Below, one piece after another: positions 19,941 through 46,150 of a stretch of DNA of 64,000 bases (position 1 is its first letter; each line of letters begins with the position of its first letter). A program made the translations under genes and the position numbers. The DNA is taken from positions 102,114,001 through 102,178,000 of the forward strand of contig OZ296650.1 in NCBI GenBank assembly GCA_965655095.1, in the 5' to 3' direction. The DNA comes from Haplodiscus bocki (taxonomy: Eukaryota). A model generated the notes under the pieces. It had not been told where the DNA came from, did not search any database, and was given only the letters and a program-made list of their open reading frames with translations.

Positions 19941-20857
19941 CATCTTGTTTTTCAGCTTCTGACTGGATGATGAGATCTTCTGTCAACGTTGATACCAAAT
20001 TTGCGTTAAAGAGGAGAATTAAAAGAGAATGCGTGTTATAGATTTAGTCGTCAGATGTACAACTGAAACCTGCCACACGTCAATTCGTCTCTCAATGTGT
20101 GAGGATTAGCAATATGACAACACACAATTTTCACAGTAGTTACGGACAGAAGTCTATGGAGCATAAAATGAAGCAGATCAGCAGTGTTTCTCAAAATACA
20201 CCTTTGTGAAAACAAAAGAAAACGCTGTTTGGTTAGAATTCTATCCATTTTCTCCAACGTTTTTGTGTGAGCAACAAGAAAAGCGATGGAAAGAAGCTGA
20301 CACCTACACAGCATCTACCCAATATTGGCTGCGGGACGTTACCTACCACAATCTTGACACATATCAAAACTGACAATGCTTAATCGAAAATCTAATTTCA
20401 AGACATGTGTGACTCTAAACATACCTTAGGTGGTCCCATAAATTACCGAACCCTATACTGATCTTCAAAATTTGCAGAATTAAAGCATACTTCGATTCAT
20501 AAGTGTACAACCTTCTCAGCTTCAAGGCTAGTTCACCGTTTTTTAATGTCTGCACGATCTGGCTCTACACTCTATCACGATGCATTGCCGAACAAAATCA
20601 GCTCGGATTGCACAACATAATACATTGTTGGTCTTATGCACTCGGTTTTTGCCGAACACTCAAACTTGTCTAAAAGTAAGGACTTGGACAATCAAATCCA
20701 TACCTTACATTAATACATCGCGGAAAAATACCCTGTCTCAATACATTGTGAGACAGGGTATTTTCTCTCTCTGTCTCTGTTTAATAATAATGAGATATTA
20801 TTAAATAGTGTTTTTCAGTTGAAATGTTTGGGGCAGCCGTGGTGGCCCCATCTAGAA

Positions 20858-21562
20858 ATGAGATACCATCTCTTCAGATCCTCACCGAAGAAGTCTCTCT
20901 TCATTGCGGATTCTCAAACAAGAGATTTGGAAGTCCCCAACATAAATATCTTGACTTTACCTGGAGCCAAAGTCAACGACGTGCAGAGGTTCATCCCACC
21001 GAAAGGCAAATACGAGCTCATCGCCATATTTGTCGGTGGAAACGACTTGTACAACTACTGTCTCCCTTCCGAGTCATCAGTTGAGCAGGTTGCCGAGCGA
21101 ATTTGTGCCCTAGCTGACCAGCTGCTCCTGGTAACTGAAAGTGTGTTTGTGTTAGCTGTTCCCCCCCGCTTTCCAACCAGAAGGCAGATTAGAGCCTACG
21201 GACTCACTGAGGAGCAACTTCAACGCCACACGCAGGTCACCAAAATCCTGGGTGAACGGTCGCTGAAGTCCAAGTGGGGCTATCGAGGCATCTCCCAGCA
21301 CGTTTATTGTGAAAGTCACGTGTCGGAGTGGGACCATTATCACTTGAATTCAATTGCACTCAGTGGAATCAAGACAATCCTCAAAAACCGTGTTGTTTAC
21401 AGAAAACGATATTCCAAGAAATTGGCCAAAAAACAGCACCTCGCCTTCTATGAGTGTCAAAGCTACGAGAAGTGCAAGTGCGGATCCTTCAGGGAATATT
21501 ATTCCATAGGTTCCTTTCACAGGATCCACGGTAATACTACCCCTACAAAACCCAGTGGATAG
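20858..21562 (+). CDS. LINE-A ORF0: SGNH/GDSL esterase with C-terminal Cys cluster
   Basis: Blocks IADSQ, LPGAK, FVGGND and DHYH; C-terminal HLAFYECQSYEKCKC. ATG 20858 chosen by alignment with 43019-43630 (MRYHLFRSS vs MRFHILKSS). Confidence 0.85.
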   Translation: MRYHLFRSSPKKSLFIADSQTRDLEVPNINILTLPGAKVNDVQRFIPPKGKYELIAIFVGGNDLYNYCLPSESSVEQVAERICALADQLLLVTESVFVLAVPPRFPTRRQIRAYGLTEEQLQRHTQVTKILGERSLKSKWGYRGISQHVYCESHVSEWDHYHLNSIALSGIKTILKNRVVYRKRYSKKLAKKQHLAFYECQSYEKCKCGSFREYYSIGSFHRIHGNTTPTKPSG

Positions 21563-21678
21563 TTTTCCATAGGTTCCTTTTACAGGATCCACGGAAATAC
21601 TATCTCTGTACACACTGCTGTCCTCAAAAATCAAGTTGGGTTGCATAGGTTTCTTTTACAGAATCCATCGTAACATCA
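21502..21678 (+). repeat. Three ~38-bp hairpin repeats with unique 25- and 38-bp spacers
   Basis: TTCCATAGGTTCCTTT(C/T)ACAGGATCCACGG(T/A)AATACTA at 21502 and 21565, with a variant at 21641. Confidence 0.85.
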
Positions 21679-21809
21679 ACTTGAGAAAAGTTTGCCAATA
21701 AGCGAACGGTCGTTACGCTTAGTGAACCAGACCCTGAAATTCACTGTTTTACTTGTTGAATCCAACTCTTAAACAACTTATTGACAACAAAGCCAATTCC
21801 CCATCAACC

Positions 21810-22649
21810 ATGAACGAAAACTGTTTTACTTGTACCCACAGGATTGGGAAAGGAGAGAAATTCTGCTGTGTTTACTGCGACAGAGTCCTCCACTTCACTC
21901 CTGAATGCACTGGCTTCCCTGAACAAAGCATCCAAGTCCTGATCGAGCTGAAGCACAACCTGCTACATGTCTGCAACGATTGCACGCACAAGAAAACGAA
22001 CAGTGAGCCCCTGGAGGAAAAGCAAAAGCAACAGATGCAATTGAACTTCGATGACATCAACAAAAAAAATTCCGATTGCTCTGAGAACGTTCTGAAATCG
22101 TTCAAGATCATGGAGGAACTGCAAAAAGAAATAAACAGTCTCAAAACAAAACCAGCGTATTCTGCTGTAGTTGGCAACGCTACTGCAGGCAAACGTGTAG
22201 TTGTTCCTGTTCTGGAGACCAAAAAGCTTGGAATACGAGTTGAAGGGATTCCGGAAGCTGAAAACGAGAACGCCGACGAACGTCTTGCAACAGATCGGAC
22301 GGAAATCAATTCACTCCTGCATTACTTGGGAGTTGAGAGCAAGATCACCAAATTGAGTAGAGTCGGCCAATACGACAAGAACAAAGGCCCCCGAACAATC
22401 CTCTTTGACCTGGTAACCCAAGTCGACAAAGATCAAGCTGTAAAGTCAGCTTAAAAGTTGAAGACTTACAGAATACAGTCGAAAACCATATTCTTGAGCG
22501 CAGAATTGAACAAGGACGATGCGATGAAAGGAAATGAAGGACTGAAACTTCGGAGACAACTAATAGACAAAGGTATCGATCCAAAAATTCTGAGTAAGAA
22601 ATCTGACACTGCAGAAACTCAGAAACGGACTGTGGAGCACAATCTCTGA
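21810..22649 (+). pseudogene. LINE-A ORF1 (PHD finger, coiled coil, RRM-like/CTD region), premature stop at 22452-22454
   Basis: CFTC...CVYCDRVLH...EC...CNDC PHD pattern; IRVEGIPE...RVG...PRTI...; continues in frame in 22458-22649. Confidence 0.8.
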
Positions 22650-22707
22650 TTTAACAGAAAGCGATTGACTATCTTCAGAACCATCAACTGCACATATCAT
22701 TGCGACT

Positions 22708-25590
22708 GTGACACTCTTATCTTTCAATGTACGCAGTCTGTTGGACCACAAACGACGTGCAGCCCTTGCAAACTGTTTACTTCCTCTTGACTACGACATT
22801 TTATGCCTAACGGAAACCTGGCTCACTGAAAATGTCAGCAACTTCTCTATCTTCCTCAACAATTTTGGAATCTACAGGCGGGATAGGACCCCAACACAGT
22901 CAACCGGTTCCACCAAACACGGAGGTGTGCTAATTGCCATTCGTAAAAACATAAACCACGAAATAGTGTCCCTCGATGTCGAAGCACAAGACTACAAAGT
23001 TATGAAGATTTCATCTCATGACCCAGTACTGCTATGCTGCCTGTACAATCCACCTGCAACAAGTGCATACCACTGGACCAAAGCAAACAACTCGACACTG
23101 CTCCTCGAACTGAAGCAAAAAGAGATACTCCTCAACTGTAGCACAACTATTATAACTGGAGACTTGAACATGAAATCAACAAACTGGGAAACAATGTCCT
23201 CCAGAGACACGAACGAAGACTCACTGCTCACTGATTTACTTGACTCAGGTTTTCACGAATTCCTGCATCATGGTGAAGAAAAACAGCTCGACGTGCGGCT
23301 GACAAACAACCCAGACATTGTTATTAAGGCCAATCCTGACATGAGTGTCTTCAAGAAATACTCAATTGACGAAAAACCCAGCTCCGATCATCTGCCTTAC
23401 CAAACCCTACTAAACCTGACACAAGAGAGATGGCAATCACACACAAACCTGAAAGCATACGGGCTCCGGAAAGCCGACTGGGGAGTGGTTGTAGAGGCAA
23501 TTCAAAACCATCCCTTCAACCCATATTGCTACAGTAATACAAACGTACTGCTCGAATTATGGTACTTCTGGATACGGAAAATAATGGAGGATACCTTGCC
23601 AAAAGTCACAAAACATCTCTCTGAACTGCCTCCTTGGGTGACTAGCCCCACCTCACACAAGATGAAAAAGCTAGAAACGTTCAAGAGGAAAAAGAAAACG
23701 GGAGTACCAAACGTCAAGCTGGAGCTTAAAATAAAACGATTGTCAAAAGAAATCCATAGTGATGTCGAAGCCGACCTGACACATTTTGAGGAAGATGTTT
23801 TCCGCACTCGAGAGTTCAGCAAATTACAGAAATATCTTGCATGTGTTAGAAAGAAACCTGTGATACCCAGCATTGTGAAGCGACAAGGAATTCCAGCAAC
23901 TGACAAAAAACAAAGTGCAGACTTTTTCAACGAGTTCTGCAGCGTTTTCCACAAAGACACTCCAAACATCGTGAAGCCATACTATCCAAATAGAGAAGTA
24001 AAAACAGTCCACATCTCAGAAGAACGTGTCACCGAGCTTCTAGGAACGCTACAGGTTGGAAAAGCAACAGGACCAGATAGGATTGGAAACTTCTTCCTGC
24101 AGAATACAGCAACCGCTCTTGCAAAGTCTCTGGCACTCTTATACCGCACGATGGTCAATAAAGGAATCTTTCCGGCTTCTTGGAAAGTCAGTCAAATCAG
24201 CCCCATCCACAAAGATGGGGAAAAGGACTTTGTTGAGCACTATAGACCTATCAGCTTGTTGTGTTGTGTGTCCAAGGTCTTTGAACGTATAATCTTTCGA
24301 ACACTTTACGAAAATCTTCGCCACAAGCTACACCCAGCACAATACGGTTTCCGTCAAAAACGATCTGCCACCCTACAACTTCTGACCTTTCTCCACAAAA
24401 TCTACACCAACTATGATGACGAAGCAGTGAAAGAACTGGGAGTAATCTATCTCGATTTTGCAAAAGCATTCGACACAGTTCGACATGACATACTGATCAC
24501 AAAATTACAAGAAGTAGGTATTGGAGGCAAACTCCTACAACTACTTGGATCATACCTAAGTCAACGAAAACAATTCGTCAAAGTTGGTGAAGAATCTTCT
24601 GGGCTGAAGGAAGTAACGAGTGGACTACCCCAGGGTTCAATTCTTGGTCCCTTGTTATTTTTAGTTTTCATCAACGACCTGCCGAACAGCATGCAGAATT
24701 GTTACGGTTTTGCCGATGACTTTAAAGTTGTTGTGAAAAGCCAACAAGAACTCAACGAAAGCACTGCCACAATTGACTACTGCTGCGCGACGAACGGAAT
24801 GCAACTGAATGTGAATAAATGTGGCATCCTCGTACTCAGTGGGCAAATGAATGGCAAACTCAGCAACGAGAACATTGCTCTTCTCGAGACTCAGAAGGAC
24901 CTAGTTTTGGTAATAACGAAAAGTTTAACTTGACATAACAACTGTCACCAACGAACAAACAAAGCTCTAAAGGCGCTGTTTAGTCTTAAAAGAAACCTGT
25001 CCAGTAACTGCTCTATAAATGTCAAAATCAATGCCTTCACAGGGTACGTGATGCCAATACTCACGTATTGCTCCTAGTCCTGGCTCCCAAACAACACCTG
25101 TCTTAGAGATATGGAAAGAGTACAGAATATTGCCACCAAATTGTTTTACAGAAGCCATATAGAATACCGCGAACGACTACTTAAATGCAACCTACTGCCA
25201 GTATCAATGTACTATGAATTGCATGACATCCTTTATCTCGACTCACTGCTGAAAGGAAAATACGACATTGACATCAACAAATTCATATCAAAAACATCAG
25301 TTGAATCAACCAGACAATGTTCGCGGAGTGAACTGGAAGTCACTCGAACCAGGACACAGAAAGCTGATGAGAACTTTTTCATTCGATCGAGCATCCTTCA
25401 CAACATCATGTAACGGTCACTTGCGAGAATGTCGCTAAAGTTTAACAAAAGCAACCTAACTTATTTGTACTGGGACTACTTCACGAATAGGTACAGTGAA
25501 ACCAATCTTTGCACATGGGAGAATTATCTGTATATGCAACCATTGCAACCCCACTGGTAAACTCAACCATATCGGGACGATACAATGAAG
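22708..25590 (+). pseudogene. LINE-A ORF2: APE endonuclease plus reverse transcriptase, with stops after 24933
   Basis: SFNVRSL, CLTETWL, TGDLN, SDHLP (APE); YRPISLL, QYGFR, YLDFAKAFDTV, GLPQGSILGP, FADD (RT); terminal CTW...CxCxxC. Confidence 0.92.
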
Positions 25591-25656
25591 GGAGTCAATT
25601 GCCCTAGAGGACCAAACCTCTGAGGCCTCAACTACTACTACTACTACTACTACTAA

Positions 25657-26765
25657 TGTTGGGGAGTGTACGCTATCCTATTACTTTGATGAGGTATACG
25701 CTACCTTATTACTCTGTTGAGTTATACCCAGCATTAATACATTGTTGTCGTATACTCTACTTTAACACATTGCTGGGTTATACCTAATCCTAACACAATA
25801 CTGAGGTAAATCCAATCTCATTACATTGCTCGGTAATTCCCAATTTTAATGCATTGATGAGCTATACCGAATCTTAACACACTGCTGAGGTATAACCTGT
25901 CTTATTACGTTGCTGAGATGTTCCTAATCTCATAACATTGTTGAGACATATCTTGTCTTATTACATTGCTGAGCTATTCCCAACCCTAAAACAGTCGACT
26001 CGCTATGACCTATCATAAAACATAGGAACCTGCACCCTAGTCGACAGCTCTCGGGCTTTTGGGTGACGTAATACTCGATTCCGCTTGGCTGCCGACAACG
26101 TTACGTGAAACCGACAGCAATGTATTAAGATAGACCATAGTTCGACAATGTACTAAGATAGGGTATAGCTCAGCCATGTAAAAGCACAGGGTATACGTAA
26201 GCAATGTTTTGAGATTGGAAACAGCTCAGCAATGTAACAAAACAGGGTATACGTCAGCAATCTTTTAAGATTGGCAATAGCTCAGCAATGTGATAAGACA
26301 ATATATGACTCAGCAATGTTATAAGACTAGGAACAACTCAGCAATGTAATAAGACAAGGTATACATCAGCAATGTTTTAGGATTGGGAATAGCTCAGCAA
26401 TGTAATAAGACAAGGTATACGTCAGCAAAGTTTTATGATTGGGAATAGCTCAGCAATGTAATAAGACAAGATATGTCTCAACAATGTTATGAGATTAAGA
26501 ACATCTCAGCAATGTAATAAGACAGGTTATACCTCAACAGTGTGTTAAGATTCGGTATAGCTCCTCAATGCATTAAAATCGGGAAATACCGAGCAATGTA
26601 ATAAGATTGGATTTACCTCAGTATTGTGTTAGGATTAGGTCTAACCCAGCAATGTGTTAAACTAGAGTATACCACATTAATGTATTAATGCTGGGTATAA
26701 CTCAACAGAGTGATAAGGTAGCGTATTCCTCCCCAAAGTAATAGGATAGCGTACACTCCCCAAAA
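25657..26765. repeat. Central 28-bp satellite blocks in head-to-head orientation around the palindrome centre
   Basis: ACATTGCTGAG-type units to ~25990, then CTCAGCAATGT-type units from ~26115. Confidence 0.8.
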
Positions 26766-29700
26766 ATGTATTGAGACAGGGTATTTTTCCGCAATGTATT
26801 AATGTAAGGTATGGATTTGAGTGTCCAAGTCCTTACTTTTAGACATGTTTAAGTTTTCGGCAAAAACCGAGTGGATAAGACCAACAATGTATTATGTGCA
26901 ATCCGAGCTGATTTTGTTCGGCAATGCATCGTGATAGAGTGTAGAGCCAGATCGTGCAGACACTAAAAAACGGTGAATTAGCCTTGAAGCTGAGAAGGTT
27001 GTACACTTATGAATCGAAGTATGCTTTAATTCTGCAAACTTTGAAGATCAGTATAGGGTTCGGTAATTTATGGGACCACCTAAGGTATGTTTAGAGTCAC
27101 ACATGTCTTGAAATTAGATTTTCGATTAAGCATTGTCAGTTTTGATAAGTGTCAAGATTGTGGTAGGTAACGTCCCGCAGCCAATATTGGGTAGATGCTG
27201 TGTAGGTGTCAGCTTCTTTCCATCGTTTTTCTTGTTGCTCACACAAAAACGTTGGAGAAAATGGATAGAATTCTAACCAAACAGCGTTTTCTTTTGTTTT
27301 CACAAAGGTGTATTTTGAAAAACACTGCTGATCTGCTACATTTTATGCTCCATAGACTTCTGTCCGTAACTACTGTGAAAATTGTGTGTTGTCATATTGC
27401 TAATCCTCACACATTGAGAGACGAATTGACGTGTGGCAGGTTTCAGTTGTACATCTGACGACTAAATCTATAACACGCATTCTTTTAATTCTCCTCTTTA
27501 ACGCAAATTTGGTATCAACGTTGACAGAAGATCTCATCATCCAGTCAGAACCTGAAAAACAAGATGAAAATCAGATTTCAAGGAAAAAGGTTCAAAAATT
27601 TGTCGGCTTTTGAGTTAAAATTTTCTAACGCGGCAGATTTTGAAACAAAGTTTCCACAACGCGTCAGATTTTGATTTCAGAGTTTTACAACGCGTACGAT
27701 TTTGGATTGAAAAAAAATACAACGCGTTAGATTTTGAATTAAAAATTTTACGACGCGTCAGTTTTTCAAGAAAATTATATTTTTGAAAAGGAAGATTTTG
27801 AAGAAAAAAAATTTTCTAAAAAGCACGATTTTGAAAAAATTAATTTTAAAAGCAGATTTTGAAAATGTTGCACACAAATAATCACGTTTTGATCCAATTT
27901 ACCCAGTAAAATGCGCATTTTTTGCGTATTACGTGCAATCTTAAAAAGCACGATTCTGAAAAAAAATTTTTAAAAAGCATGATTTTGAATGTAAAATTAT
28001 TTCTAAAAAGCATGATTTTGAATGGAAAAGTTTTTGTAAAAAGCACGCTTTTGAAATAAAAGTTTTTCCTCTTGTCAGATTTGGAATCAACTTTTCGACA
28101 ACGCGTCAGATTTTGAATTAAAAATTTTACATCGTGTCAGATTTTGAGTGTACTTCTTTTGCAGTTTGCCAAACTTTCATGCGTTTATCTTAACAGGCCA
28201 CGTTTCCGTAATTTTTTAAGGTATGGTGTGGGTTCGGTTTTTCAAGTTATTCTGTTAGTATAGGCTTTGTGTACCCCAACTGTGATCAATGTAACAAAAC
28301 GCATTAAGACAATCAATCCGATTCGAGTTTGTTCATTGATATACGTAGATAAGGAATGCTATTTAACAAGGAAAAAACAAAAAATATTACACCAGCTAAC
28401 AAAAGAAATCAAACAAGTGAAACAAATAGCTACACTTAGATACAATTACAGTTCATCACAAACGGTGGAGTTCCATCCATTGCTCCGGGCTTGCAGAGAT
28501 CATTCAACTCTTCAACCTTAGCAACTGTTTGGTTTATTCGCCCGTCCGGTAAGTAATTTCTTTGAAAGAATGCAAAGCTGACACGCAATCAATTCCTTTT
28601 ACTGTTCATCGTTCGTAATGAAGAGAACACCGGATATGAGTCTGCTCTAGAGTGTTGTTGGTTGAGGGTACTGATTGAACATAGAGTATGTAACATTAGT
28701 GTGGCTGAGTGACATACGAGCTCATGGAACCATGTCCCATAAATTGTACGAGTTCCGAAAGATATTAGAGCTATGCTGCTCATCAACAAAACAGGTATGC
28801 TGATCGTTGCGGGGAATGCATTGGGGTTTTTCACAGGATCTGGAAATGTAATTCCGTTCTCGGTTGATCTGTCTGACTTTCGTAGGAGTTTCAGGGAAGA
28901 ACGTAATGCCACACTCAAAATCTACATAAGTCACCATGTTCTCCTCGTCAATGAAGTGTACAACGTCATCAAAAGAAAGTCTTTTTCAAAGTCGGACCAC
29001 AATTTGATATGAGATCATCTTCCGGACGCAAAATAGAATGAATTGCAAGCTTTGTAGGATCATAAGGAGAGTGTACGGATTTATTGTAGTTGTACATCGC
29101 TTCTTGCAAAAGTAAAAGTTATTCTATTTCGACAAAGGTTGAGTACTGAAATCTGATCGTAGGCAGGTATTGTTGAGAAATTTCACCAGCGGTTGGGTAC
29201 GTTGGTAGCTGCAAGAAGCGAGTTGCTGCTGTTGAGGAAGATTTTTGAAGAATGAATTTTCAGAGTAGCAAGTTGCTGCTTTTATACGATTTTAACCGCT
29301 TCATACCTGCTTTATATGGACAACTTTTCCATTTTTGGTCAAAGCTACAACGATTTCCGTAAATGGGAGTTGTTTCTCTTTTTGGGGACTTGGTGCAAGT
29401 TTTAACACTATTTTCTTTTTCAGTCATTTGTTCAGAGTAATTTCTCCAGTCAACCTGTCGCCTTATCAGGGGACTTTGTTCCTGTTGAGTGATTTTCTCA
29501 GACACGCTGTCTGGCGATGTTAATCCCCTCGAAAAATTTTCCCAGACAGTCTGTCACCATAAAAGGGGAACTTGTTCCACTTGAGTTGTTTTGACATACA
29601 AGCTCTTTCATCCATTTAACTAATTTTTAAATGTATATAGTCGGTTTTTAAAACAAAAGAAACTAATTGACAGCTCCCTTTACGGTTGGTCTTTCCCTTT

Positions 29701-37689: not shown

Positions 37690-37877
37690 CACAATCACAG
37701 GTATGCTAAAATATACGTTAACCTATACATAGAAGTAGTTAATAAGTGGCAATTCTATATATAATATTTATAAATTTCTCACAATCGGACATTCGGGATA
37801 ATTTTGACACGAACGAGGTCAGTGTGATGTGAGAAAATTCTGAATACTTTATATAGAATTGCCACTTATCAACTACT
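37690..37877 (-). repeat. Right TIR of Maverick A
   Basis: Ends ...GCCACTTATCAACTACT (AGTAGT on the minus strand). Inverted homolog of 5808-6000. Confidence 0.8.
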
Positions 37878-38289
37878 GGCAGCGGTTTCAGAAATTGAAT
37901 ATTTTGTCTACTCGTAGTAGTATCAATTTATTACAATACACCCTCATCATTGATTTATTATGAAGAAAATTCATTACAAATTGCAATTTTGGCATATCAG
38001 CTTATCTGGTTTCCAGTGCAGTGACTGGCACCCGCGAAATCCCCACCGAGTGACCTGCACAAAACTGTCGACATTGATTGAAGAAATACTGCCGGTAGTT
38101 AAGAAGATAGATAATTCTATGAGTACTTCGTAAAATTAATTTTCCAAAAAGTCTCAACACATCAAATTTTTCAAAATCATGATAAAATTTTCGTTTCCTG
38201 CAGCCCTCTTGCAACTACTGTAACCGGCTTTCAAACAAACAGACGCAGGTATGCTGTAGCCCTCTAGTAATTATAAGTGTCTCCCAATT

Positions 38290-38710
38290 GATCAAAATTG
38301 AGTATATGCTTCATGTAGCCCACTAGCGACTCTAAGCGACACACACAAACAGTTGACCTGGACCCAAGACTATAGTGAGAGATTCATAAAAGCCATGAGA
38401 CTATTCTACCAGATTAAACACATGTCAGTCTCAAGTACCAAGCAATGCAAGCTAAACACCCATGTCGTGCCAATTGCAACCTGTGGCTCCTAGGCATGGT
38501 ACCCAAGCAAGGCCAACATCTAACTTGTTAAAAATCGAAAAAGACAGCAACCAAATAGATTTCAAACAGCAAACTTGATTACAAAGAACGACTATAAGAT
38601 CTACACCAGCTCCTCCTCAGCGTATACGTCGAGTTCCTTGACACCCTAATCTTTATTGCCCAGGTTGAAGAGCAATACAATGTCCAAATCCACGAATTAC
38701 AGTTGCATGA
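38290..38710 (+). mobile_element. Degenerate CR1/L2 ORF2 C-terminal fragment
   Basis: Remnants resembling LTWT...KAMRLFYQIKH...VVPIATCGS*AWYPSK...DYKERL, similar to the post-RT regions of LINE-A and LINE-B. Confidence 0.5.
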
Positions 38711-38950
38711 AGCCAGCAATTTCTACTGAATCTGTTGACAACACTGTGGGTGAGTGCTCTATTTTTAGTTCTTTCCGCCCATGGGAGTGCAGCGCCCCAG
38801 GGATAGACATTGGGTCGCCGTGGCCGTTAAGTGCTGAGCTAACGAGAAAAGGCCTCAAAAAAGTAATGGTAAACGACTTTTCAGAACAATAATAATAATA
38901 ATAATTATCGGATTTACTGCAGAAAGTTGTAGGGATTTATCCCGGGCAGT

Positions 38951-41760
38951 TTATGAAGTGCATTGAGGGCATCTGCAAGCTATTCGCCAGGTGCACAGGT
39001 TGTTTTCATTGTACTTTGTTTCAAAGAAGTTCCAGAAGTTGCGGAGAATTTTGGGTTTCAACCCAATTGTTTTCGTGATAACAAAACAGGGGAGGAATTT
39101 GATGAGGCGGCAGGTTCTTGTGAAGAATTCTTGTTGAGCATTTTCAAATTTGGGAGTTTGGACGACTGGGATGATGCGATCTTCTCTTCTAGGTCCTTGT
39201 TCGAGGGATAGAAAACCTTCGAGGTTGAAGGCGTACTGTCCGTTGCAGATGTTTGAAAGTAGGAGGATATCTAGCATTTGTAGGTATAGAGGGACTGGGA
39301 GTAAGTCGAGCTTTATGAGGCGGTCTTTGTAATCCTTGATAGATGGGATGATCCAGTTTGTTACTCTTTTCTGGAGTTGCTCAATTTTCTTCATGTCCCC
39401 GCGAGAGGGGAACCAACAGGAAGATGCAAAGCAGAGAACAGATAGGACTGTGCTTTTGTAGAGATTTAGCTTAGAGGAGGTGCTCAAGTTGGGAGAGACA
39501 TTTCGTTTCAGAAGGTAGAAAGCTCCATAAGCTTTTCCTAGGCGGAGTGAGATATGATCGGACCAGGTGAGACTGCTGTCGACGAGGAGTCCCAGGTCGC
39601 GGTGGGAGTCTACGACTTCGAGTTTCACATAGCAGAACGTGTACTCTGGAGGAGGACCGTGGAAGCAGATTACTTTACTTTTGGAGGGGTGGAAGCACAT
39701 TTTGTTGGTCGAGGCCCACTTTTCGAGGACTGGGAGGGCATTGAAGAGGTGTGAGTTTGACGCTATTAATTTCCCATCGTCGGCTAACATGAATATAGTC
39801 GCGTGGACTAACTTGATCAGTTCGGGCAGATAGTCGATGTAAACCAGAAAGAAGAGTATTGCGAGAAGAGCCCCTGTGGGACTCCGCTGGTTACATCTAG
39901 ATTACCGGACACACTACCATCGACGTCGACGTGCTGTTTTCTGTTTGTTAGGTAGTCCTGGATGAGTAGAAGAAGTTTTCCTCGAATTCCCTTTGCATAA
40001 AGTTTCCTTAGTAGAATTGAGTGGTCGACTTTGTCGAAAGCTTTGCGGAGGTCAAGATAGAGCGCGTGGGTTGTTAACCTCTGATCTTTGCTGTTGTAGA
40101 TAATGTTGAGCGAGGCTAGTAATTGGATTATATAGGAGCGCCCTTTTCTGAATCCATATTGGGCGTCGGAGAGGGTAGGGGAGATGATTTCCCAGACATT
40201 GGTGTAGATACATTTTTCGAAGACTTTGCTTGCGCAGGGAAGTAGGGCAACTGGCCTGTAATTGGAGACTGAGTCTTTTGCTCCGTCTTTAAACAGAGGT
40301 TTGATGCTTGCAATTTTCCACTGGGAAGGGAATTTGCCCACTTGTTTGGATTTGGTGAAAATATTGGATATGGGTTTTGCTAGGCCTGTGGAGCAGGTTT
40401 TGAGAAGGCGTGAGGGTAAGCCGTCAGCTCCCGTGGCTTTTGAAGTGTCGAGATTTGATAGGATCTCGGTGACTTTGCTGACTGAGGTGTCGAATGAACT
40501 GTCGGGGTGATAGTCGAATGCTTCGGGAGGTAAGGCTGGCTCGGAGGATTTGGTATTGAATACTGAATGAAAGTATTGATTTAGCATGTGGGCTTTCTCG
40601 AGACTGCTATGTGCAGAGTCGGCACCGTTTTTGAGAACGGGAGGGAGGTGGGCCCCCTTCTTAAGATTCTTCAAATGTTTGAATATGTGTTCGGAGTTTC
40701 GGCTCTCGGAAAGACGTGCCTGGTATGTACACAGGTCATCATCGGCGCTGCAAGATACTCTTTCTTTGAAAGAGAGCAGTTTGGTTTGGTACGATGTGGT
40801 GAGTTTTGGATTGCTTTCGAGCGTGTTGAGTTTCTTCATCAGATGAGAGGTCTCTGGGGAGATCCTGGGTCGTAGTCGAGAGCGATGCACAGATTTCAGA
40901 GGTACGAACTTGTTAAGCAGAGGTTTGAGCCATTCATGCCAGAGGGCTAGGAGAAGCGCGGGGTTTGTCCAGCAGTAGGGCAGGAATGGGGAATCGAGAG
41001 CAGCCCTGTTGAGCCCTTCGTGATCAATTTTGTTGAAATTGAAGGACTTGGAAACCCTTTCGAGGGGTGCTAAGGCATTGACATTTGGTTTGATGGAGAC
41101 AGGGTGGTGGTCTGAGAGTGGCGAGTTGTTTAGATATGCGTCGTCCGTCGCTAGAGAGGATATGACTAGATCGGGGTTATCTGTGAGGCAGAGATCCAGA
41201 GTTTTGGAAGCGGTCGTGATGGAATGATTCAGTTGATGCAGATTGTGCTCCATGAAGAAGTCAATGCAATTTAGTTCGTAGTCCGAGTTTGTCGAGTTGT
41301 CCTCCCAGTTTATCCCTGAGAGGTTGAGGTCTCCTGTTAGAATAACTCGAGGTTTGGAGTTTGATTATTTTACTTGGCACAGAATGGACTCGAAAGTGGA
41401 TGGTTGCCATCTGTAGTTGCTGCCCGATGGTGGGTTGTAAACGTTAACAATTACAAAAGGCTTGTTTGATTGGATAGTGGTAACAACACAGCAGCAGCCA
41501 GTGGGTAGAGAGAGCGGGATTATTTCATGGCTGATAGAGCTTCTGACAGCCGTGAGCACCCCGCCGTGCTGGGATGCATCTCTTTCAGAACGTAGGCAGT
41601 TGCACTTGGGGAGGAAGAGTTCAGTGTCTCTGAAACTGCTGTCAAGCCAGGTTTCGCAGAGGCATAGGATGTCGAAGGGGTTGGCTGAGATGAAGTTTGC
41701 AATGCAGGTTCTTCTTTGCTGAGATATGAGGCTTCGAACGTTGTTGGGATAGTCAAGCAG
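38951..41760 (-). pseudogene. LINE-B ORF2: APE plus RT (stop at 41365, frameshift near 39860)
   Basis: NNVRSL, CLCETWL, ITGDLN, SDHHP; YRPVALL, QYGFR, YLDLRKAFDKV, GVPQG, LADD; terminal CTWRIACRCPQC. Confidence 0.92.
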
Positions 41761-42605
41761 AGGAAGCAGCACTGCCTCCATCAGGAGGCCCCTTCTCGTC
41801 TTCGCATGTAAGGTCATCGAGCAGGACGTTGCCTAGAAACAGTTGAAAGTTTTTGATTTTAAGCGATTTGGCTTGAACGCCTGAGTTTATCAGCTCTCGG
41901 CGCTTTTTGAGGAATTTGCGTTCTTTGATGATGTCTTCTTGAGAGAGACTGGGGGAGAGGAAGGCTTTAAATTTGGTGAAGCCTCGGAGTAGTGAAGCTT
42001 TCCCCAGGATTTGTTTTGCCTCCCAGACGTTTGCCACGGTTAGTAAGGTTGACCGGGGTCGGGTGCGTTTCTCTTTGAATGATGGTTTGAATTTTCCGAG
42101 GCGTCGCGCATCGACAATGGTTGGTCTTTCATCTAAGAAGTCGAGAACCTCTTTGACTTTCGCTGCTTCCTGGTTGACGATGCTGGTAGTGTTATCTGGG
42201 TTCTCCGGAGAGGATGTGGTGGCCTCGGGAATTCCATCGATTCTTATTTGGCACAAAATGCTTTGAGAGACCGCTTTTTGGCCGGGGTACAGCAGGCTCT
42301 TTTTGAGCTTGGTATTGCGCAGAGGGACCTGAGGCTTGAACTGGCATTGCTGATTCTAATTTCTTTATGACCACTTCTTTGATTTCCTCGAACTTGCTTT
42401 CGTTGGAGGCAAGTCTTTGGACGAGTTCGTTGTTTTGCGCTTTGGCATCGGCAAGCTGGGATAGAGCCTCTCTGAGGAGGCATTCTAATGTAGCTTTGTT
42501 GGACCTGCCGGTGAAGCTGCTCAGTTCAGCTGGCTCCACTGTGAGAAGCTCTGCGATGGTGGGATAATAGTTCTTGTCTGAGGGGAGACAAGTTCTAGAT
42601 GTCAT
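41753..42605 (-). pseudogene. LINE-B ORF1 (coiled coil plus RRM-like/CTD region), frameshift near 42250
   Basis: Two overlapping pieces, 42192-42605 and 41753-42256. IRIDGIPE...RRLG...RPRS...LKKRRELI is homologous to the LINE-A ORF1 C-terminus. Confidence 0.8.
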
Positions 42606-42626
42606 TGTGAGGCGGGGATCTTATGC

Positions 42627-43000
42627 TCTTAGGAGGACCCCGGAGGGTGCCCACGAGATGTTCCCGACAGATAACACCAGAGAATTCTCAGAAAGACCCC
42701 GGAGGGTGCCCAGGAGAAATTTTTTGGCGGAGAGGGTGGCAAAGAGTTAGCGGAAGAGAGTTCTCAGGAGGACCCCGGAGGGTGCCCAGGAGAAAGTGGA
42801 GGAGATTTCTCAGGAGGACCCCGGAGGGTGCCCAGGAGAAAATTCTTGGCCGAGACGGTAGGATAGAATGAGGTTTGGTTTGGCTGAGAAGGGAAAAATC
42901 TCGGAAACTCGTGAGGTACCTGGAGGGAGGTGTGCAAGGAACACTAGATACAAGGAAAGAGGCAGCTTCAGAGGACCTCGGAGGGTGCCCGTGGAAGCTG
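42627..43000 (-). repeat. Five ~34-bp hairpin repeats with unique spacers
   Basis: TTCTCAGGAGGACCCCGGAGGGTGCCCAGGAGAA (+ strand) exact at 42761 and 42807, with variants at 42627, 42685 and 42963. A possible degenerate copy lies near 42910. Confidence 0.9.
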
Positions 43001-43018
43001 GGAAAATTCTAACCTGGT

Positions 43019-43630
43019 TTAGGCTGAGTAGAGGCCGCACTTGCACTTGTTGCCCGAGCACTCGTGGCGTTGGATGTCGCCGGCGTTGTGGATGTCCGTG
43101 CTGTGGTTCTCGTAGAGAATGTTGTTTTTGAGGATGCTGCGGAGACCCACTAGACCTTGCTCGCTGAGATGGATATCGTCGGATCCAAGGTGATGACTGG
43201 CGTATATGCGCTTGGATACTCCCCGATATTGGTAGCCCTCTCTTTCCCTTAGGAGCTCGTTGACTGCGGATACACGCTTTTTGGCGGCAGCACCGTCGAA
43301 ACGGAAAGGGATAGCAAGAACGTAAACTTTCCTGGTGAGGAGAAGGGCTTCCTCAGCGAGCTCAATCAGCTCGTTGGCCACTTGAACTGGGGTGACTGAG
43401 CTGAACACAGGGATTCCTGCTCGGGTTGTTGTCTCAAATAGGTCGTTTCCCCCAATGAAGATAATGATAATGTCGTAGGCACCTTTCTTTGGGAGGAAGT
43501 TACGGTCGTGGCAAACTTTTCCACCAGGGATACTTAAGATGTTGAGGTTGGGATAGGTGAGATACTGGGTTTGGGAATCTGAGATGAGAAGGAACTTCGT
43601 TGTTGATGACTTAAGGATGTGGAATCGCAT
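43019..43630 (-). CDS. LINE-B ORF0: SGNH/GDSL esterase with C-terminal Cys cluster
   Basis: ISDSQ, IPGGK, FIGGND and DDIH blocks intact; ends HECSGNKCKCGLYSA. Confidence 0.88.
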   Translation of the reverse strand: MRFHILKSSTTKFLLISDSQTQYLTYPNLNILSIPGGKVCHDRNFLPKKGAYDIIIIFIGGNDLFETTTRAGIPVFSSVTPVQVANELIELAEEALLLTRKVYVLAIPFRFDGAAAKKRVSAVNELLREREGYQYRGVSKRIYASHHLGSDDIHLSEQGLVGLRSILKNNILYENHSTDIHNAGDIQRHECSGNKCKCGLYSA

Positions 43631-43679
43631 CTGCTTTCCGCCTATCTCTGAAATCCTTCAGTCGAAGGCGGTCTCATAG

Positions 43680-46150
43680 GCATAGTACACCATATCACAT
43701 GAAAAAGTCTATTTAATAAGTTTGCCAGTGACATCAATGAAACAACAAATGCCAACAAAAACAGTGACATCACCTTGTGAGCAAACAGATGACGGCGTAA
43801 CGGAACCACGCCCAGCGAGGTCTGTGTTAAGGGACAGGGCACACTTGGTCGTCATCCTGCTACTGTTCCAAGACGGGTGAAGATAGGAATGTGAAAATCT
43901 TCAAGTCGAAAAACTGGAATATGTTAAGGACGAGATGAAGCGTTGGGATGTTGATGTAATGTGCATTGCAGAGATGAGATAGAAAGGATCAGCGTGCAAC
44001 AATAGTGGACAACAGACAGTGATCTACTCCGGTAAAGACAGCAGTGCAGAAAGCGGAGTAGGCGTGATTCTAACTGAGCGCATGTCCAGAACTCTGATAG
44101 GGGGTTTGGCCATCTCAGACAGGCTTTTGGTGCGAACTTCAGCGCGTCACCGTTCGATCTGCTCATAATCTAGATGTATGCACCAATTGCGCAATCGGAC
44201 GACTCCACAGTAGAAATTTCATGAAGAAGCTATGAAACAAGCAAAAAAAGTTGAGATTTTTCGATTGTAATGGGTAATTTTAACGCAAAAATTGGACAAT
44301 CAAGTCCCAGCTAAAAAAGGGCAAAATTTAAGCCATGAATGATGTAAGACAAAATGTAAATGAAATAGCGACGTAACTGCAAACAAAACATCGAAAGATA
44401 CCACGAATTGAACCGATTTGTCAAACTGCTATGTATTGAGAGAAGTTTTGTAAGCGAATCGAGAAAAAATTGAGAAAACCATAAATTGTTCATGGAGAGA
44501 ATGTCATCGACTCATCAGGAAGACGACCCAAAAAAGTACAGCCAGTTAGGTTGCGCAGTAATTGAATATGAGAGAAGACAATTACTCTTTGAGTCGAAAG
44601 ACAACCTACTGCGTTTGGAGATTTATAGTAATTTACTTTACAAAGACGATTCGAAAGATACTGAAACTATAGCTTTCGAGGAGCAACTTTCTAGTGAACC
44701 AATTTTGCGTGAAGAAGTTCAGAGTGCTCTGAGAAGTGAGAGGCTCGTCAAAGCCAGCGGCGAGGATGGAATCACAGCGGACTTCAAGGTGAAAACTTGC
44801 GATCGAGTTATTGACTTTCTCATGTTCTTCAAGGAAACCTACGAAGAAGGAGACATTCCTGGAGAGTTGAGAAAAAACATTATCCCTCTACTAAAGAAAC
44901 CACGAGCACAGGAGTGTAAGGAGTTTAGAGCTATTGCGTCAATGAGTCACAAGACGAAATTTCTGCAGAAGATCCTACTCAAGAGGATAAGATGGTAGAG
45001 AAGCAAACTTATTCAAAACCATGTATGGATTCTTACAAGACAAGGGCACCGGAAAGGAAAATTATGTTTTCAAGACTCTGGCTGAACGCTGTCGTGAAGG
45101 GAATGTCTATCTTACTGTTTCATAGATTACACAAAAGCGCTTGATAGTGCAACATAACTTGTTCGAAATCTTAAGCGGAAGAGATTTGACCGATAACGAT
45201 TTAAAGGTGGAACAAGACTTGTAATTCAACCAGACTGGAGCAATACGAGTGGAAAACGATTTATCTGGTAATCTTCCCCTTGCTATTGATGTTCGGCAAA
45301 GCGACACCCCTCCTCCCGATTTCTTAACACTCTACTCGGAAATGATAAATGCAAGCATTGAAGGCGTTCGAGTTATTGGCATTAATCTCAACAACATCAG
45401 ATATGCAGATGACACAGTTCTAGCGACGAACGGAAAAAATGTCAAAAAACGAACGGAGAAAACATAGATGAACAGAGACAAAATTTTAATACGGAGATGA
45501 ATTCGAAGAAAACGAAAGTTGTGGTAATATCAAGGAATCCAAATGTACCAGCGAACATAACACTCAACAACAAAACGCGAAAACAAGTCAAAGCTCTCAT
45601 AATCATAATTGGTTCAATCATAATTGAAGATAGGAGCCAGCGGGAAAAATTGATCAGAGTTGAAGCTAAATAAGCCTTCCAGAAAATGAAGAGGTTCTTT
45701 CAAAGCTAAAATTGACAATGTGCACAAGATTCAGAACACTCAGATTTTTTTATGAGCCCCTTTTTGTGTCCGGCTGTGAAACCTGGACATTGGTGGCAGC
45801 AGAGAAGAACAAGTTAATGGCCACCGAAATTGGGTTCTTGAGAAGGATGCTGAAAATCAAGTTTACAGACAAAATTTCAAATACTGAAGTCCCCGAAAGA
45901 GCTGGGAAGCAAAGTTGGATCATGAAAACAATAAACAGGCGGCAAACAACCCTCTTTGGGCAAGTTAGGACAAGTGGTTATAACTTGGAAGATCATTGGC
46001 AAAAGATCGAAAGGGAGGCAACCAAGGAAGGTCACCAATCAAATTTGAGAAGGGACTGAGAGTAGTGCAAACAGTGCCGTTTTACCACCTGCAAGAGAGA
46101 GAAAACTCATGGTCGCCTACATCTTTTGACATGGCACTCCATAGAAGAAG
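43680..46150 (+). mobile_element. Degenerate RTE-clade LINE (APE-RT) with a short (AAG)n tail; its 5' part may be 38720-38887
   Basis: KLEYVKDEMKRWDVDVMCIAEMR, IVMGNFNAKIG, ECKEFRAIASMSH, NNIRYADDTVL, GCETWTL...RRMLKI; AGAAGAAG at 46143-46150. Confidence 0.85.

Follow-up and report, generated by a model that had tools for sequence, protein, structure and literature searches.

We report here a portable two-part accessory module of retrotransposons, in which a stand-alone predicted SGNH esterase gene (ORF0) is followed by copies of a conserved three-tier RNA hairpin, both placed ahead of the normal first gene of the element. Within the 64,000-nucleotide stretch of Haplodiscus bocki contig OZ296650.1 that was analysed (the window), two decaying LINE copies, LINE-A and LINE-B, each encode ORF0, then 3 or 5 hairpins, then an L1-type ORF1 and an endonuclease/reverse transcriptase ORF2 (Table 1). 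The layout given in the preliminary description was therefore confirmed. Its interpretation as a conserved RT-associated module was only partly supported, as the unit is conserved and transposes together but follows ORF0 and not one kind of RT. No description of the module was found in the papers searched or in Rfam, a search that did not extend to Repbase and Dfam. We place the probability of the overall explanation developed below at roughly 0.6.

Table 1. Features of the two LINE copies, in positions of the window.
Feature	Position	Strand	Observations
LINE-A, whole insertion	20748..25657	+	First ~14 nt (20748-20761) are an inverted copy of the flank at 20728-20741; the right arm of the palindrome near 26760 is the empty site; (ACT)8 tail at 25631-25655
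ORF0-A	20858..21562	+	Stand-alone SGNH esterase, 234 aa from the ATG, TAG stop; intact; one internal ATG (21450) against 10.5 expected
Hairpin A1	21491..21544	+	Inside the last codons of ORF0-A; model R1 hit E 4.5e-7
Hairpin A2	21553..21608	+	ORF0 stop codon lies in its lower stem; -20.8 kcal/mol, z -3.3; R1 E 5e-9
Hairpin A3	21631..21684	+	Lower stem entirely different from that of A2 but still paired; -19.7 kcal/mol, z -4.5; R1 E 4e-5
ATG-poor tract of LINE-A	20859..21809	+	From the ORF0 AUG to the ORF1 AUG; 1 ATG against 12.6 expected; 0 of 300 shuffles as low
ORF1-A	21810..22649	+	Cys-rich PHD-like finger, coiled-coil region, L1-type RRM/CTD; one premature stop at 22452; an ORF1 profile hits L1 ORF1p structures 2ldy, 2w7a and 2yko at E 2e-4 to 1e-3
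ORF2-A	22708..25560	+	AP endonuclease plus reverse transcriptase; in-frame stops at 24931, 25075 and 25411; no frameshift
LINE-B, whole element	38889..43723	-	(ATT)n tail at its 3' end, near 38889-38906; homology with the second LINE-B copy (L002) starts and ends at these coordinates
ORF0-B	43019..43630	-	Stand-alone SGNH esterase, 203 aa; intact; no internal ATG
Hairpin B1	42963..43000	-	Divergent copy; lower stem (CAGCUUC/GAAGCUG) differs from B2-B4; R1 E 0.008
Hairpin B2	42806..42841	-	
Hairpin B3	42761..42794	-	R1 E 1e-12
Hairpin B4	42685..42718	-	R1 E 9e-12
Hairpin B5	42615..42665	-	Conserved 32-nt core ends about 20 nt before the ORF1-B AUG; R1 E 2e-8
ATG-free tract of LINE-B	42606..43629	-	From the ORF0 AUG to the ORF1 AUG; 0 ATG in 1026 nt against 6.9 expected
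ORF1-B	41753..42605	-	Coiled-coil region plus L1-type RRM/CTD; split in two by a frame change near 42256-42286
ORF2-B	38951..41817	-	Endonuclease plus RT; broken by frame changes into three pieces (41817-41365, 41253-39817, 39790-38951)

The two ORF0 proteins were 39-43% identical and carried SGNH blocks I (DSQ), II (PGG/PGA), III (GGND) and V (DxxH). Their matches to the Pfam GDSL profile fell below the curated cut-off (16-22 bits against 32.9), and a profile of ORF0 found no solved esterase by sequence at E<=1, but an AlphaFold model (pLDDT 89) matched PAF-acetylhydrolase and other SGNH structures (E 4e-7, TM about 0.6). The catalytic Ser, Gly, Asn, Asp and His were conserved across 16 sequences, and in family H of the ORF0 lineages (families A to J) dN/dS was 0.10 (12 synonymous and 4 non-synonymous changes), signifying that ORF0 is a functional gene. 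ORF0 is typically about 190-215 aa long, basic (pI 8.8-10.0), and ends in a conserved H-x6-C-x3-4-C-x-C motif followed by aromatic residues. The preliminary description had also pointed to the intact ORF0s beside broken ORF1 and ORF2. This fits chance, as ORF0 is only 0.6 kb with an estimated probability of no lesion of about 0.5 per copy, and the ORF0 of LINE-B differs from that of L002 by 14 non-synonymous and 1 synonymous change, which suggests decay.

To determine whether the layout is a unit of transposition, we compared insertions with empty sites and with related copies. An empty site in the other arm of a palindrome showed that LINE-A was inserted whole. Family D is a 4.6-kb element whose identical ORF0 was present on at least 24 contigs; six loci examined were 99.65-99.93% identical with unrelated flanks, and most kept all three ORFs intact. 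Intact three-ORF copies were also present in family H (locus L017) and family J (loci L019-21). A fusion of ORF0 to ORF1 in frame, set beforehand as a result that would count against the layout, was not seen: 216 relatives were found, and the 150 best were 61-320 aa long, mostly starting at Met1, so none of these is fused to a long ORF1. The alternative that ORF0 is a piece of a longer esterase-ORF1 fusion split by decay, with hairpins as chance repeats, draws only on the decayed state of both window copies and is refuted by the intact copies; moreover, the stop falls at the same place, just after the CxC motif, in 10 lineages of 29-47% identity.

In several related LINE families the gene behind the module is an L1-type ORF1. 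The module was not restricted to LINEs, as ORF0 plus hairpins was also found between the 5' LTR and gag in one Copia-like and one Gypsy-like element. The Copia-like locus (L010) has 136-nt TG..CA LTRs, a 5-bp target-site duplication (ATTAC) and integrase before RVT_2, whereas the Gypsy-like locus (L012) has LTRs, a 5-bp duplication (AACAC) and RT-RNaseH-integrase. Each LTR carrier rests on a single locus, as L010 and a further locus, L011, proved to be the same. A LINE fragment that keeps only its 5' part is not what LINE insertion would be expected to produce, and capture is therefore more likely than nesting.

The repeats are real, with 3 units in LINE-A, 5 in LINE-B and 6 in L002, and each folds into the stacked hairpin of the preliminary description; over 22 units the mean z-score against dinucleotide shuffles was -2.0. 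However, the hairpins of the two LINEs are not unrelated in sequence as had been claimed, since one covariance model built across families (R1) finds both, and the 'unique spacers' are mostly the variable lower stems of the hairpins. The three-tier structure with compensatory changes was seen in 9 of the 10 ORF0 lineages sampled, with or without R1 support, with seven different apical stems (six fully paired 4-bp variants and one 3-bp) and a lower stem unique to each copy. On a plain MAFFT alignment 79.8% of cells paired against 67.6% in shuffles, the covariation score was 0.416 against 0.266 (0 of 500 shuffles), and the apical helix was 90.9% paired. Raw folding energy did not favour the sense strand, but 15 G-U cells in the middle stem would be A-C on the other strand. 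The 31 R1 hits at E<=0.01, in 249 kb, all lay in these arrays except one (locus L004, 4924-4979), a hairpin upstream of the ORF1 of an ORF0-less LINE; four weaker hits (E 0.018-0.51) lay elsewhere. The specificity of the R1 hits counts against the hairpins being chance repeats.

These features fit poorly with a role at the DNA level or in RNA processing, such as internal promoter monomers like the mouse L1 5' repeats, small-RNA precursors or cleavage sites. The units are tandem, their number varies between copies (5 against 6 in LINE-B), and 5' repeat arrays are reported in CR1-group elements (PMC13343379), but those repeats are 100-500 bp and occur in elements without ORF1. Stems that keep pairing through changes on both sides while the sequence drifts indicate selection on a folded single strand and not on a duplex binding site. 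In addition, the apex is conserved and the arms are not, the opposite of a microRNA precursor, and LTR carriers already have LTR promoters. We consider this reading very unlikely.

The tract from the ORF0 AUG to the ORF1/gag AUG was nearly free of ATG in all frames. Tracts of 595-1026 nt held 3 ATGs against 63.2 expected (P 1.5e-23), whereas downstream ORFs carried 10-20 ATG per kb. The first ATG after the ORF0 stop opened ORF1/gag in families A, B, D, E, F, H and J, and the -3 position was a pyrimidine at 8 of 10 ORF0 starts and a purine at 7 of 7 ORF1/gag starts. The ORF0 of family C, the only one with no downstream cistron, had a normal ATG count (11 against 11). This is the signature of leaky scanning, and the IRES or reinitiation device proposed in the preliminary description is not needed. 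An IRES, although the array is structured, directly upstream of ORF1/gag and has pyrimidine-rich loops, is very unlikely, as it would remove the need to purge ATGs from the 600-nt ORF0, the units are short and variable in number (1-6), and in family J they lie 3.8 kb downstream of the ORF1 start. Nevertheless, hairpins of -12 to -28 kcal/mol lie in the scanning path and should reduce flow to ORF1. Families A, B, D and J also have short upstream ORFs, one of which in family D ends in AUGA on the ORF0 start, and sorting by upstream-ORF reinitiation may add to, or replace, simple leaky scanning there.

The role of the hairpins is the least certain step, and our best guess, held tentatively and at less than even odds, is that they are cis-acting RNA tags bound by a protein, most likely the esterase, as it is the only gene product shared by all carriers. 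The support is indirect and comes from sequence alone: the hairpin travels with ORF0 across different backbones, it tolerates 5'UTR and 3'UTR positions, and the ORF0 proteins are basic with a C-terminal His/Cys motif. Position between ORF0 and ORF1 is common but not obligatory, since in family J the hairpins are in the 3'UTR and in family I a single one is in the 5'UTR, while family G (loci L013 and L016) showed none. The ORF0 tree was unresolved as to co-evolution of hairpin and protein.

In 7 of 9 lineages (families A, B, C, D, E, F and H) the array starts 0-40 nt after the ORF0 stop, which fits a position-dependent post-termination role at least as well as a tag. The hairpins might recruit a host factor, for example a pyrimidine-tract binding protein, that would shield the RNA from nonsense-mediated decay, which a stop codon more than 4 kb from the 3' end would trigger, or help post-termination ribosomes resume. 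The apical loops are pyrimidine-rich (UUUAC, UCCG, UUUU, CUUUUC, UCUC, CUUU). In family J, ORF1 starts 3 nt after the stop, leaving no room for hairpins, and a 20-nt 95% complementarity joins the flank of its 3'UTR hairpins (4870-4889) to 1014-1033, just after the stop (estimated chance expectation about 2e-5). Such a need would travel with ORF0 into any backbone, and the Rous sarcoma virus stability element after the gag stop offers a possible parallel. However, families I and G do not fit, the same decay hazard exists at the ORF1 stop of every LINE without such hairpins, reinitiation would not require an ATG-free ORF0, and no host factor is identified. This reading remains possible but is less likely than the tag.

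Alternatively, the hairpins might be a packaging, localisation or export signal read by a host protein or by ORF1p/Gag, unrelated to the esterase. They are repeated and structured, have a conserved internal loop and mismatch, and lie in non-coding parts of the RNA; hairpin pairs between the 5' LTR and gag are classic retroviral packaging signals, and some insect LINE RNAs carry localisation stem-loops. But the carriers have unrelated first genes (L1-type ORF1, Copia gag, Gypsy gag), so a shared element-encoded reader other than ORF0p is unlikely. Different hairpin variants coexist in one assembly (A, B and H in ERZ26859043) and similar variants occur in different assemblies (A/E, C/F), which does not look host-driven. 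The L004 hairpin (minus strand), with no ORF0 detected, is one weak case in favour, but that copy may be 5'-truncated. We regard this alternative as unlikely; of the roles suggested in the preliminary description, binding or packaging sites remain the best guess.

Esterases are already known from type IV ORF1 proteins of CR1, L2 and RTEX LINEs, such as zebrafish ZfL2-1 ORF1p (Kapitonov & Jurka 2003; Schneider et al. 2013, PMC3905857; Metcalfe & Casane 2014, PMC4120745), which share with ORF0 a basic, PAF-acetylhydrolase-like SGNH esterase with intact catalytic residues, encoded upstream of the RT of an endonuclease-type LINE. There the esterase follows a coiled coil inside the only upstream ORF and the class is defined as lacking RNA-binding domains, whereas here the esterase is the whole ORF without a coiled coil, coexists with a full L1-type ORF1, has a C-terminal His/Cys motif, is ATG-free and comes with a hairpin. 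Stand-alone GDSL/SGNH genes shared among unrelated retroelement classes, showing modular exchange, include ORF3 of bdelloid Vesta LTR elements and Athena/Terminons (PMC5408684) and the SGNH ORF of Ngaro elements (PMC9210276). Those lie downstream of pol or the recombinase and were judged independent captures of other esterase lineages, with no linked RNA structure or ATG depletion reported, whereas here one esterase family sits upstream of gag/ORF1 in both LINEs and LTR elements.

For translation, the closest precedent is leaky scanning through ORFs I and II of rice tungro bacilliform virus, which lack internal AUGs over about 900 nt, and of badnaviruses (Futterer et al. 1997, as reviewed in PMC5902531). 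These share with the module about 0.6-1.0 kb of coding sequence kept free of AUG in all frames, with weak upstream and better downstream start contexts, on the RNA of a reverse-transcribing element. They are, however, plant pararetroviruses with different genes, where scanning follows a ribosome shunt and no hairpin array lies between the cistrons. Termination-reinitiation is described for SART1, with UAAUG plus a downstream hairpin (Kojima et al. 2005, cited in PMC5902531), and for human L1 ORF2; a hairpin downstream of a stop codon between LINE cistrons is shared, and family J has UAG-AGU-AUG, but reinitiation does not explain the ATG-free ORF0 and spacers here reach 460 nt. Retroviral packaging hairpins between the 5' LTR and gag and phage coat-protein operator hairpins are likewise repeated small hairpins with a conserved apex and variable stems in the leader of a reverse-transcribed RNA, read by an element-encoded protein, as is proposed for the hairpins here. 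The analogy involves no sequence relation, and the putative reader here would be an esterase and not a nucleocapsid.

Taken by strength of evidence, the layout, its movement as a unit, the LTR carriers, the covarying hairpins and the depletion of ATG are shown by the sequences, whereas leaky scanning is inferred from sequence statistics, and protein binding by the hairpins and the esterase as their partner are inferred still more indirectly. In this view, ORF0 and the hairpin spacer have been kept free of AUG in all three frames and the ORF0 AUG is mostly in a weak context, so that part of the scanning 40S subunits pass it and start at the next AUG, that of ORF1/gag, which would let the cassette sit in front of a gag-like gene without silencing it. 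Placed just after the ORF0 stop codon, the tags would let the new protein load onto the RNA that encoded it and carry a lipid- or membrane-directed activity into the particle.

The stretch is eukaryotic in character, with 33-50% GC, many satellites, several LINE fragments and no clear host gene, and within it we looked specifically at two elements, LINE-A on the plus strand and LINE-B on the minus strand, which are 34% identical in ORF2 and 39-43% identical in ORF0. LINE-A sits in the left arm of a palindrome of about 20 kb whose right arm lacks it, and as the sequence around 26760 reads straight through the insertion point, the 4.9-kb block, ORF0 included, arrived as one insertion. At its 5' junction the first ~14 nt of the insert are an inverted copy of the adjacent flank, forming a perfect 13-bp hairpin with an 8-nt loop without a clear target-site duplication, which looks like a snap-back or template-switch scar. 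LINE-B was bounded by its homology with a second copy of the same element, L002. The arrangement given in the preliminary description, an esterase ORF0 followed by hairpins, ORF1 and reverse transcriptase in both elements, was confirmed.

Coordinates of the features in the window and in the related loci (L-numbers) used for comparison
Feature	Location	Strand	Description
Palindrome	window 13560-34210		Arms 13560-20760 and 26752-34210, 92-99% identical; satellites with 28/84/168-bp and 31-33-bp units in mirror order; centre near 26200; LINE-A interrupts only the left arm
LINE-A, whole insertion	window 20748-25657	+	
LINE-A 5' junction	window 20728-20761		Inverted copy of the flank
LINE-A 5'UTR	window 20790-20857		Like that of family D
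ORF0-A	window 20858-21562	+	
ORF1-A	window, start 21810	+	
ORF2-A	window 22708 to about 25560	+	
Stem-loop before the LINE-A tail	window 25570-25630		10-bp stem, GCCCUAGAGG...CCUCUGAGGC
LINE-A tail	window 25631-25655		(ACT)8
LINE-B, whole element	window 43723-38889	-	
ORF0-B	window 43630-43019	-	
ORF1-B	window, start 42605	-	
ORF2-B	window	-	In three pieces
Satellite	window 49721-51193		67-bp unit, 22 copies at 97% identity, in the most AT-rich part of the window
Other mobile-element remains	window 44486-44998, 51401-52240, 52566-59279, 62459-63990		RT-like ORF next to the 5' end of LINE-B; hAT-like DUF659 ORF (-); third LINE (+) with an ORF1-like piece at 52566 and a (TC)44 tail at 59193-59279; fourth LINE fragment (-)
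Run of 150 N	window 55534-55683		Inside the third LINE
ORF1 duplication in the second LINE-B copy	L002 7433-7889		229-nt tandem duplication
ORF0 of family C	L003 2964-7307		With complete BEL/Pao pol upstream and three hairpins downstream
Hairpin Dx	L004 4924-4979	-	R1 E 0.0055, just upstream of ORF1 of an ORF0-less LINE
Family D 5'UTR	L005 6447-6500		
LTRs of the family E carrier	L010 6294-6429 and 11455-11590		99% identical
LTRs of the family F carrier	L012 about 6333-6482 and 10369-10561		
Intron-like stretch of family G	L013 about 7110-7150 and L016 about 1495-1535		
Single hairpin in another LINE copy	L014 3389-3445	-	R1 E 0.5, just upstream of ORF1
Complementary pair of family J	L019 1014-1033 and 4870-4889		20 nt, 95% complementary

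ORF0 carries the blocks of the SGNH/GDSL hydrolase superfamily, as S19, G60 and N62 are invariant and G36, D151 and H154 are at least 90% conserved across 16 ORF0 sequences (P0001 numbering), and all of them are present in both window copies. The AlphaFold model (pLDDT 89.4, pTM 0.88) has a flavodoxin-like SGNH fold, and a Foldseek search with it placed PAF-AH Ib alpha (1BWR, 1WAB) at the top with E 4e-7 and TM 0.6, followed by further SGNH structures, 106 matches in all at E<=0.001. However, Pfam Lipase_GDSL and Lipase_GDSL_2 scores of 15-22 bits remained below the curated cut-offs of 23.6 and 32.9, and a sequence profile of ORF0 found no meaningful hit and no esterase among solved structures, which marks this as a divergent lineage. 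The ORF0 proteins are basic (pI 8.8-10.0) and end in a conserved H-x6-C-x3-4-C-x-C motif followed by aromatic residues and then the stop. LINE-A carries four nonsense codons and LINE-B frame changes, while both ORF0s are intact; selective preservation of these two ORF0s was considered and rejected, as the ORF is short and the ORF0 of LINE-B differs from that of L002 by 14 non-synonymous and 1 synonymous change, which suggests decay and is consistent with chance. In family H, by contrast, copies from two different sources differ by 4 non-synonymous and 12 synonymous changes in ORF0, giving dN/dS 0.10. The long 'intact' ORF1 of 377 aa in L002 contains a tandem duplication and is therefore not the normal form.

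Downstream of ORF0, a profile of five ORF1s hits the RRM/CTD of mouse and human L1 ORF1p (E 2e-4 to 1e-3), and families A, D and H add a Cys-rich N-terminal finger for which Pfam gave only weak C1_2/zf hits. ORF2 encodes an AP endonuclease plus RT (Exo_endo_phos(_2) and RVT_1 domains), and the elements have no poly(A) but short tandem-repeat tails, (ACT)8 in A, (ATT)6 in B and (AAT)n in J. These features agree with the CR1/L2 group of the Jockey superfamily, although the clade is inferred from them and not from an RT tree, and a search for ORF2 relatives returned nearly all unnamed metagenome proteins and no clade label. A stem-loop lies directly before the (ACT)n tail of LINE-A, where stringent-type LINEs have their RT recognition hairpin, and is unrelated to the hairpins associated with ORF0. 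Apart from these two elements, the other mobile-element remains in the window carry neither ORF0 nor a hairpin of the kind described below.

To determine whether the layout is general, we searched for ORF0 relatives with an exhaustive profile search, which found 216. The 150 best are 61-320 aa long, most begin at Met1 of the alignment and none is long enough to be fused to an ORF1, a fusion that had been named beforehand as a refuting outcome. A profile of a five-sequence subset found only three metagenome loci, and a collection of viral contigs contained no relative. Genomic context was obtained for ten lineages, comparing only natural copies, and the LINE carriers among them are families A and B of the window together with D, H, I and J. 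At least 24 contigs carry an identical family D ORF0, and six loci share a 4.61-kb element at 99.65-99.93% identity with unrelated flanks, which starts 58 nt before the ORF0 AUG and has all three ORFs intact in most copies. Families H (locus L017, a JGI metagenome) and J (three Tara Oceans and other marine assemblies) are also intact, so that ORF0 is a regular first cistron and not a broken piece of ORF1. A BRAP gene flanking family D is at most 40% identical to any named animal protein, its host being a divergent metazoan.

The module is not confined to LINEs. In L010, the locus of family E, ORF0 and three hairpins lie between a 136-nt TG..CA LTR and a 1234-aa gag-pol with integrase (rve, aa 517-587) before RVT_2 (936-1143), a second LTR follows, and the whole is flanked by a 5-bp duplication, ATTAC, as in a Ty1/Copia-type element. 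In L012, the locus of family F, ORF0 and two hairpins lie 18 nt after the 5' LTR and are followed by a 325-aa gag-like ORF, RVT_1 plus RT_RNaseH and then Integrase_H2C2/rve, with a matching 3' LTR and a duplication, AACAC, as in a Ty3/Gypsy-type element, although the pol is in pieces. Each LTR case rests on one locus, as L011 proved to be the same locus as L010. As LINE insertions are truncated from the 5' end, a piece holding only the 5' part of a LINE is not a normal nested insertion, and capture is the simpler reading, though it is inferred. In L003 (family C), ORF0 starts 76 nt after a complete BEL/Pao pol (peptidase A17, RT, integrase, DUF5641) and may be a 3' ORF of a BEL/Pao element, but a search for LTRs around this pol found none.

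Parsing of the minimum-energy folds of 22 hairpin units gave the same architecture in lineages A, B, C, D, Dx, E, F, I and J, where Dx is a single unit in an ORF0-less, D-like LINE on the minus strand of locus L004. From apex to base it consists of a loop of 4-6 nt, mostly pyrimidines; an apical stem of 4 bp, occasionally 3; a 1x1 mismatch, usually U-U but C-C in B, CC/A in D and paired in E2, E3 and F; a GG/CC middle stem; an asymmetric internal loop; and a lower stem of 3-17 bp that differs in sequence in every copy. The apical stem occurs as UCCU/AGGA, UUCU/AGAA, ACCC/GGGU, ACUU/AAGU, UCCC/GGGA, ACCG/CGGU and ACC/GGU. The hairpins of A and B, which the preliminary description had held to be unrelated in sequence, are therefore one structural motif, and a CRISPR-like repeat-spacer reading was rejected because the supposed spacers are variable stems. 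A microRNA-precursor reading was likewise rejected, as the apex is conserved and not the arms.

On a plain MAFFT alignment, 79.8% of cells form standard pairs against 67.6% in shuffles and the covariation score is 0.416 against 0.266, with no shuffle out of 500 reaching either observed value. The apical helix is 90.9% paired and four of its six pairs change on both sides, and the model-fitted alignment gives the same picture. Sliding the partner columns lowers the percentage paired, whereas the covariation score at +1 (0.405) is almost as high because the A and D units are offset by one column. As units within a family are related, these figures overstate independence, and the seven distinct apical stems across families are the firmer evidence. 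Fifteen G-U cells in the middle stem argue for the sense strand, but raw folding energy does not discriminate between strands. A covariance model built from six families (R1) gave 35 hits in 249 kb, of which the 31 at E<=0.01 lie in these arrays apart from the Dx unit, while four weaker hits (E 0.018-0.51) lie elsewhere, one being the 5'UTR hairpin of family I and another lying just upstream of the ORF1 of a different LINE. In the two LINE copies where a single hairpin lies upstream of ORF1 (L004 and L014), no ORF0 was detected; these copies may be 5'-truncated, or the hairpin may exist without ORF0. No Rfam family matched anywhere in the window at the gathering score.

Copy number of the hairpin varies from 1 to 6 and also between copies of one family, as LINE-B has 5 here and 6 in L002. 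Family H has a larger hairpin on the same base, whereas family G (L013, L016) shows none and instead has a conserved GGUAAGU...(about 30 nt)...UUGCAG/ACGUAAAA stretch after ORF0 that resembles a very short intron. Usually the array starts 0-40 nt after the ORF0 stop, but in family I a single hairpin precedes the ORF0 AUG and in family J two hairpins lie in the 3'UTR, where the flank of hairpin J1 is complementary to the site just after the ORF0 stop. This is the longest inverted match in the family J element, and no long-range complementarity between spacer and 3'UTR was found in the other families. An ORF0 phylogeny built to test co-evolution with hairpin type left 8 of 13 inner branches unresolved.

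The first ATG after the ORF0 stop is the ORF1 or gag start in A, B, D, E, F, H and J, the arrangement in J being UAG-AGU-AUG. ORF0 itself is almost free of ATG in all three frames, with internal counts of 1 against 10.5 expected in A, 0 against 7.4 in B, 0 against 9.6 in D, 1 against 10.2 in E, 1 against 7.6 in F, 0 against 7.3 in H and 0 against 9.8 in J, whereas the ORF0 of family C, which serves no downstream cistron, has a normal count of 11 against 11. Over the whole tract of 595-1026 nt there are 3 ATGs against 63.2 expected from dinucleotide shuffles (P 1.5e-23), while the downstream ORFs carry 10-20 ATG per kb. ORF0 starts have a pyrimidine at -3 in 8 of 10 lineages and ORF1/gag starts a purine at -3 in 7 of 7, a mostly weak first and a stronger second start context. 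This is the arrangement described for leaky scanning through the AUG-free ORFs I and II of rice tungro bacilliform virus (PMC5902531), and it would make an IRES or reinitiation signal, the former of which had been suggested initially together with a re-initiation device, unnecessary. Stop-codon readthrough of ORF0 was rejected, since on reading the sequences further stops follow within 3-36 codons. Families A, B, D and J carry short upstream ORFs, and the 5'UTRs of A and D are alike in having TTATTAAATAG...TTGAAATGTTT and then a GGGG...CCCC hairpin just before the ORF0 AUG; in D the upstream AUG opens an 11-codon ORF whose UGA overlaps the ORF0 AUG (AUGA). Sorting by an upstream ORF may contribute there, though either way ribosomes would have to scan linearly through the tract.

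The role of the hairpins is the weak point of the interpretation. All the evidence is sequence-based and comes from metagenome assemblies. What the comparison establishes is a selected RNA structure that travels with ORF0, while its role, its binding by any protein and the production of both proteins from one capped RNA are inferred. The initial interpretation of a conserved RT-associated module with binding or packaging sites is only partly supported, as the module also occurs in LTR elements. We prefer, with a probability of only about 0.35, a cis-acting tag bound by the esterase, since the esterase is the only product common to all carriers, the motif tolerates any non-coding position and the protein is basic with a knuckle-like C-terminus. 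The main rival, which we hold to be somewhat less probable, is a position-dependent post-termination element acting in RNA stability or ribosome resumption, which explains the usual position right after the stop and the family J tether. A localisation or packaging signal read by the host, an IRES, promoter monomers or processing sites are less likely. A further-reaching and doubtful possibility is that ORF0 and its hairpin form a self-contained cassette of enzyme and address tag, in which the esterase would bind the hairpin through its basic surface and C-terminal His/Cys knuckle, loading in cis as it leaves the ribosome. Being AUG-free, such a cassette could be swapped by template switching between co-packaged LINE, Copia and Gypsy RNAs without silencing the recipient's gag, and would be a horizontally exchangeable lipid- or membrane-targeting add-on for any retroelement and a natural protein-RNA pair that had not been recognised.

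Esterase ORF1 proteins of CR1/L2/RTEX LINEs are coiled-coil fusions that replace an RNA-binding ORF1 (PMC3905857, PMC4120745), and a transposon-specific His191/Ser228 pair is reported for ZfL2-1 (Schneider 2013). In that type IV class the esterase is preceded by a coiled coil in the only ORF upstream of ORF2 and no structured RNA-binding domain is present, whereas here the predicted esterase fold starts at residue 4 and fills the ORF, and a separate ORF1 with similarity to the L1-type RRM/CTD follows. SGNH ORFs are also known downstream of pol in bdelloid LTR elements, and in Ngaro elements (PMC5408684, PMC9210276), and a recent survey of CR1-group elements in vertebrates reports only esterase-type ORF1 or none (PMC13343379). 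Literature searches for a 5' esterase ORF, three-ORF LINEs or an esterase upstream of gag returned nothing matching, and in the papers searched, which leaves aside Repbase and Dfam entries, we found no description of a 5' stand-alone esterase cistron, its ATG-free design or the hairpin.

What the esterase of non-LTR retrotransposons does has been open since 2003, as the known esterase ORF1 proteins lack any RNA-binding domain and the zebrafish one is dispensable in human cells. Here the esterase is a separate gene kept next to an RNA-binding ORF1 of L1 type as judged from profile similarity, under purifying selection as seen in family H, and paired with a conserved RNA structure, which gives a concrete and directly testable protein-RNA hypothesis. 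The ATG-free design would also be a clear animal-retroelement case of long-range leaky scanning, so far a textbook feature of plant pararetroviruses, and would explain how a 600-nt gene can be placed in front of gag without silencing it. ORF0 and the hairpin model are new markers for annotating a LINE lineage that is abundant in marine metagenome assemblies but almost absent from named protein databases. The same cassette in LINE, Copia-like and Gypsy-like backbones, each LTR case being a single locus, is direct evidence of gene exchange across retroelement orders.
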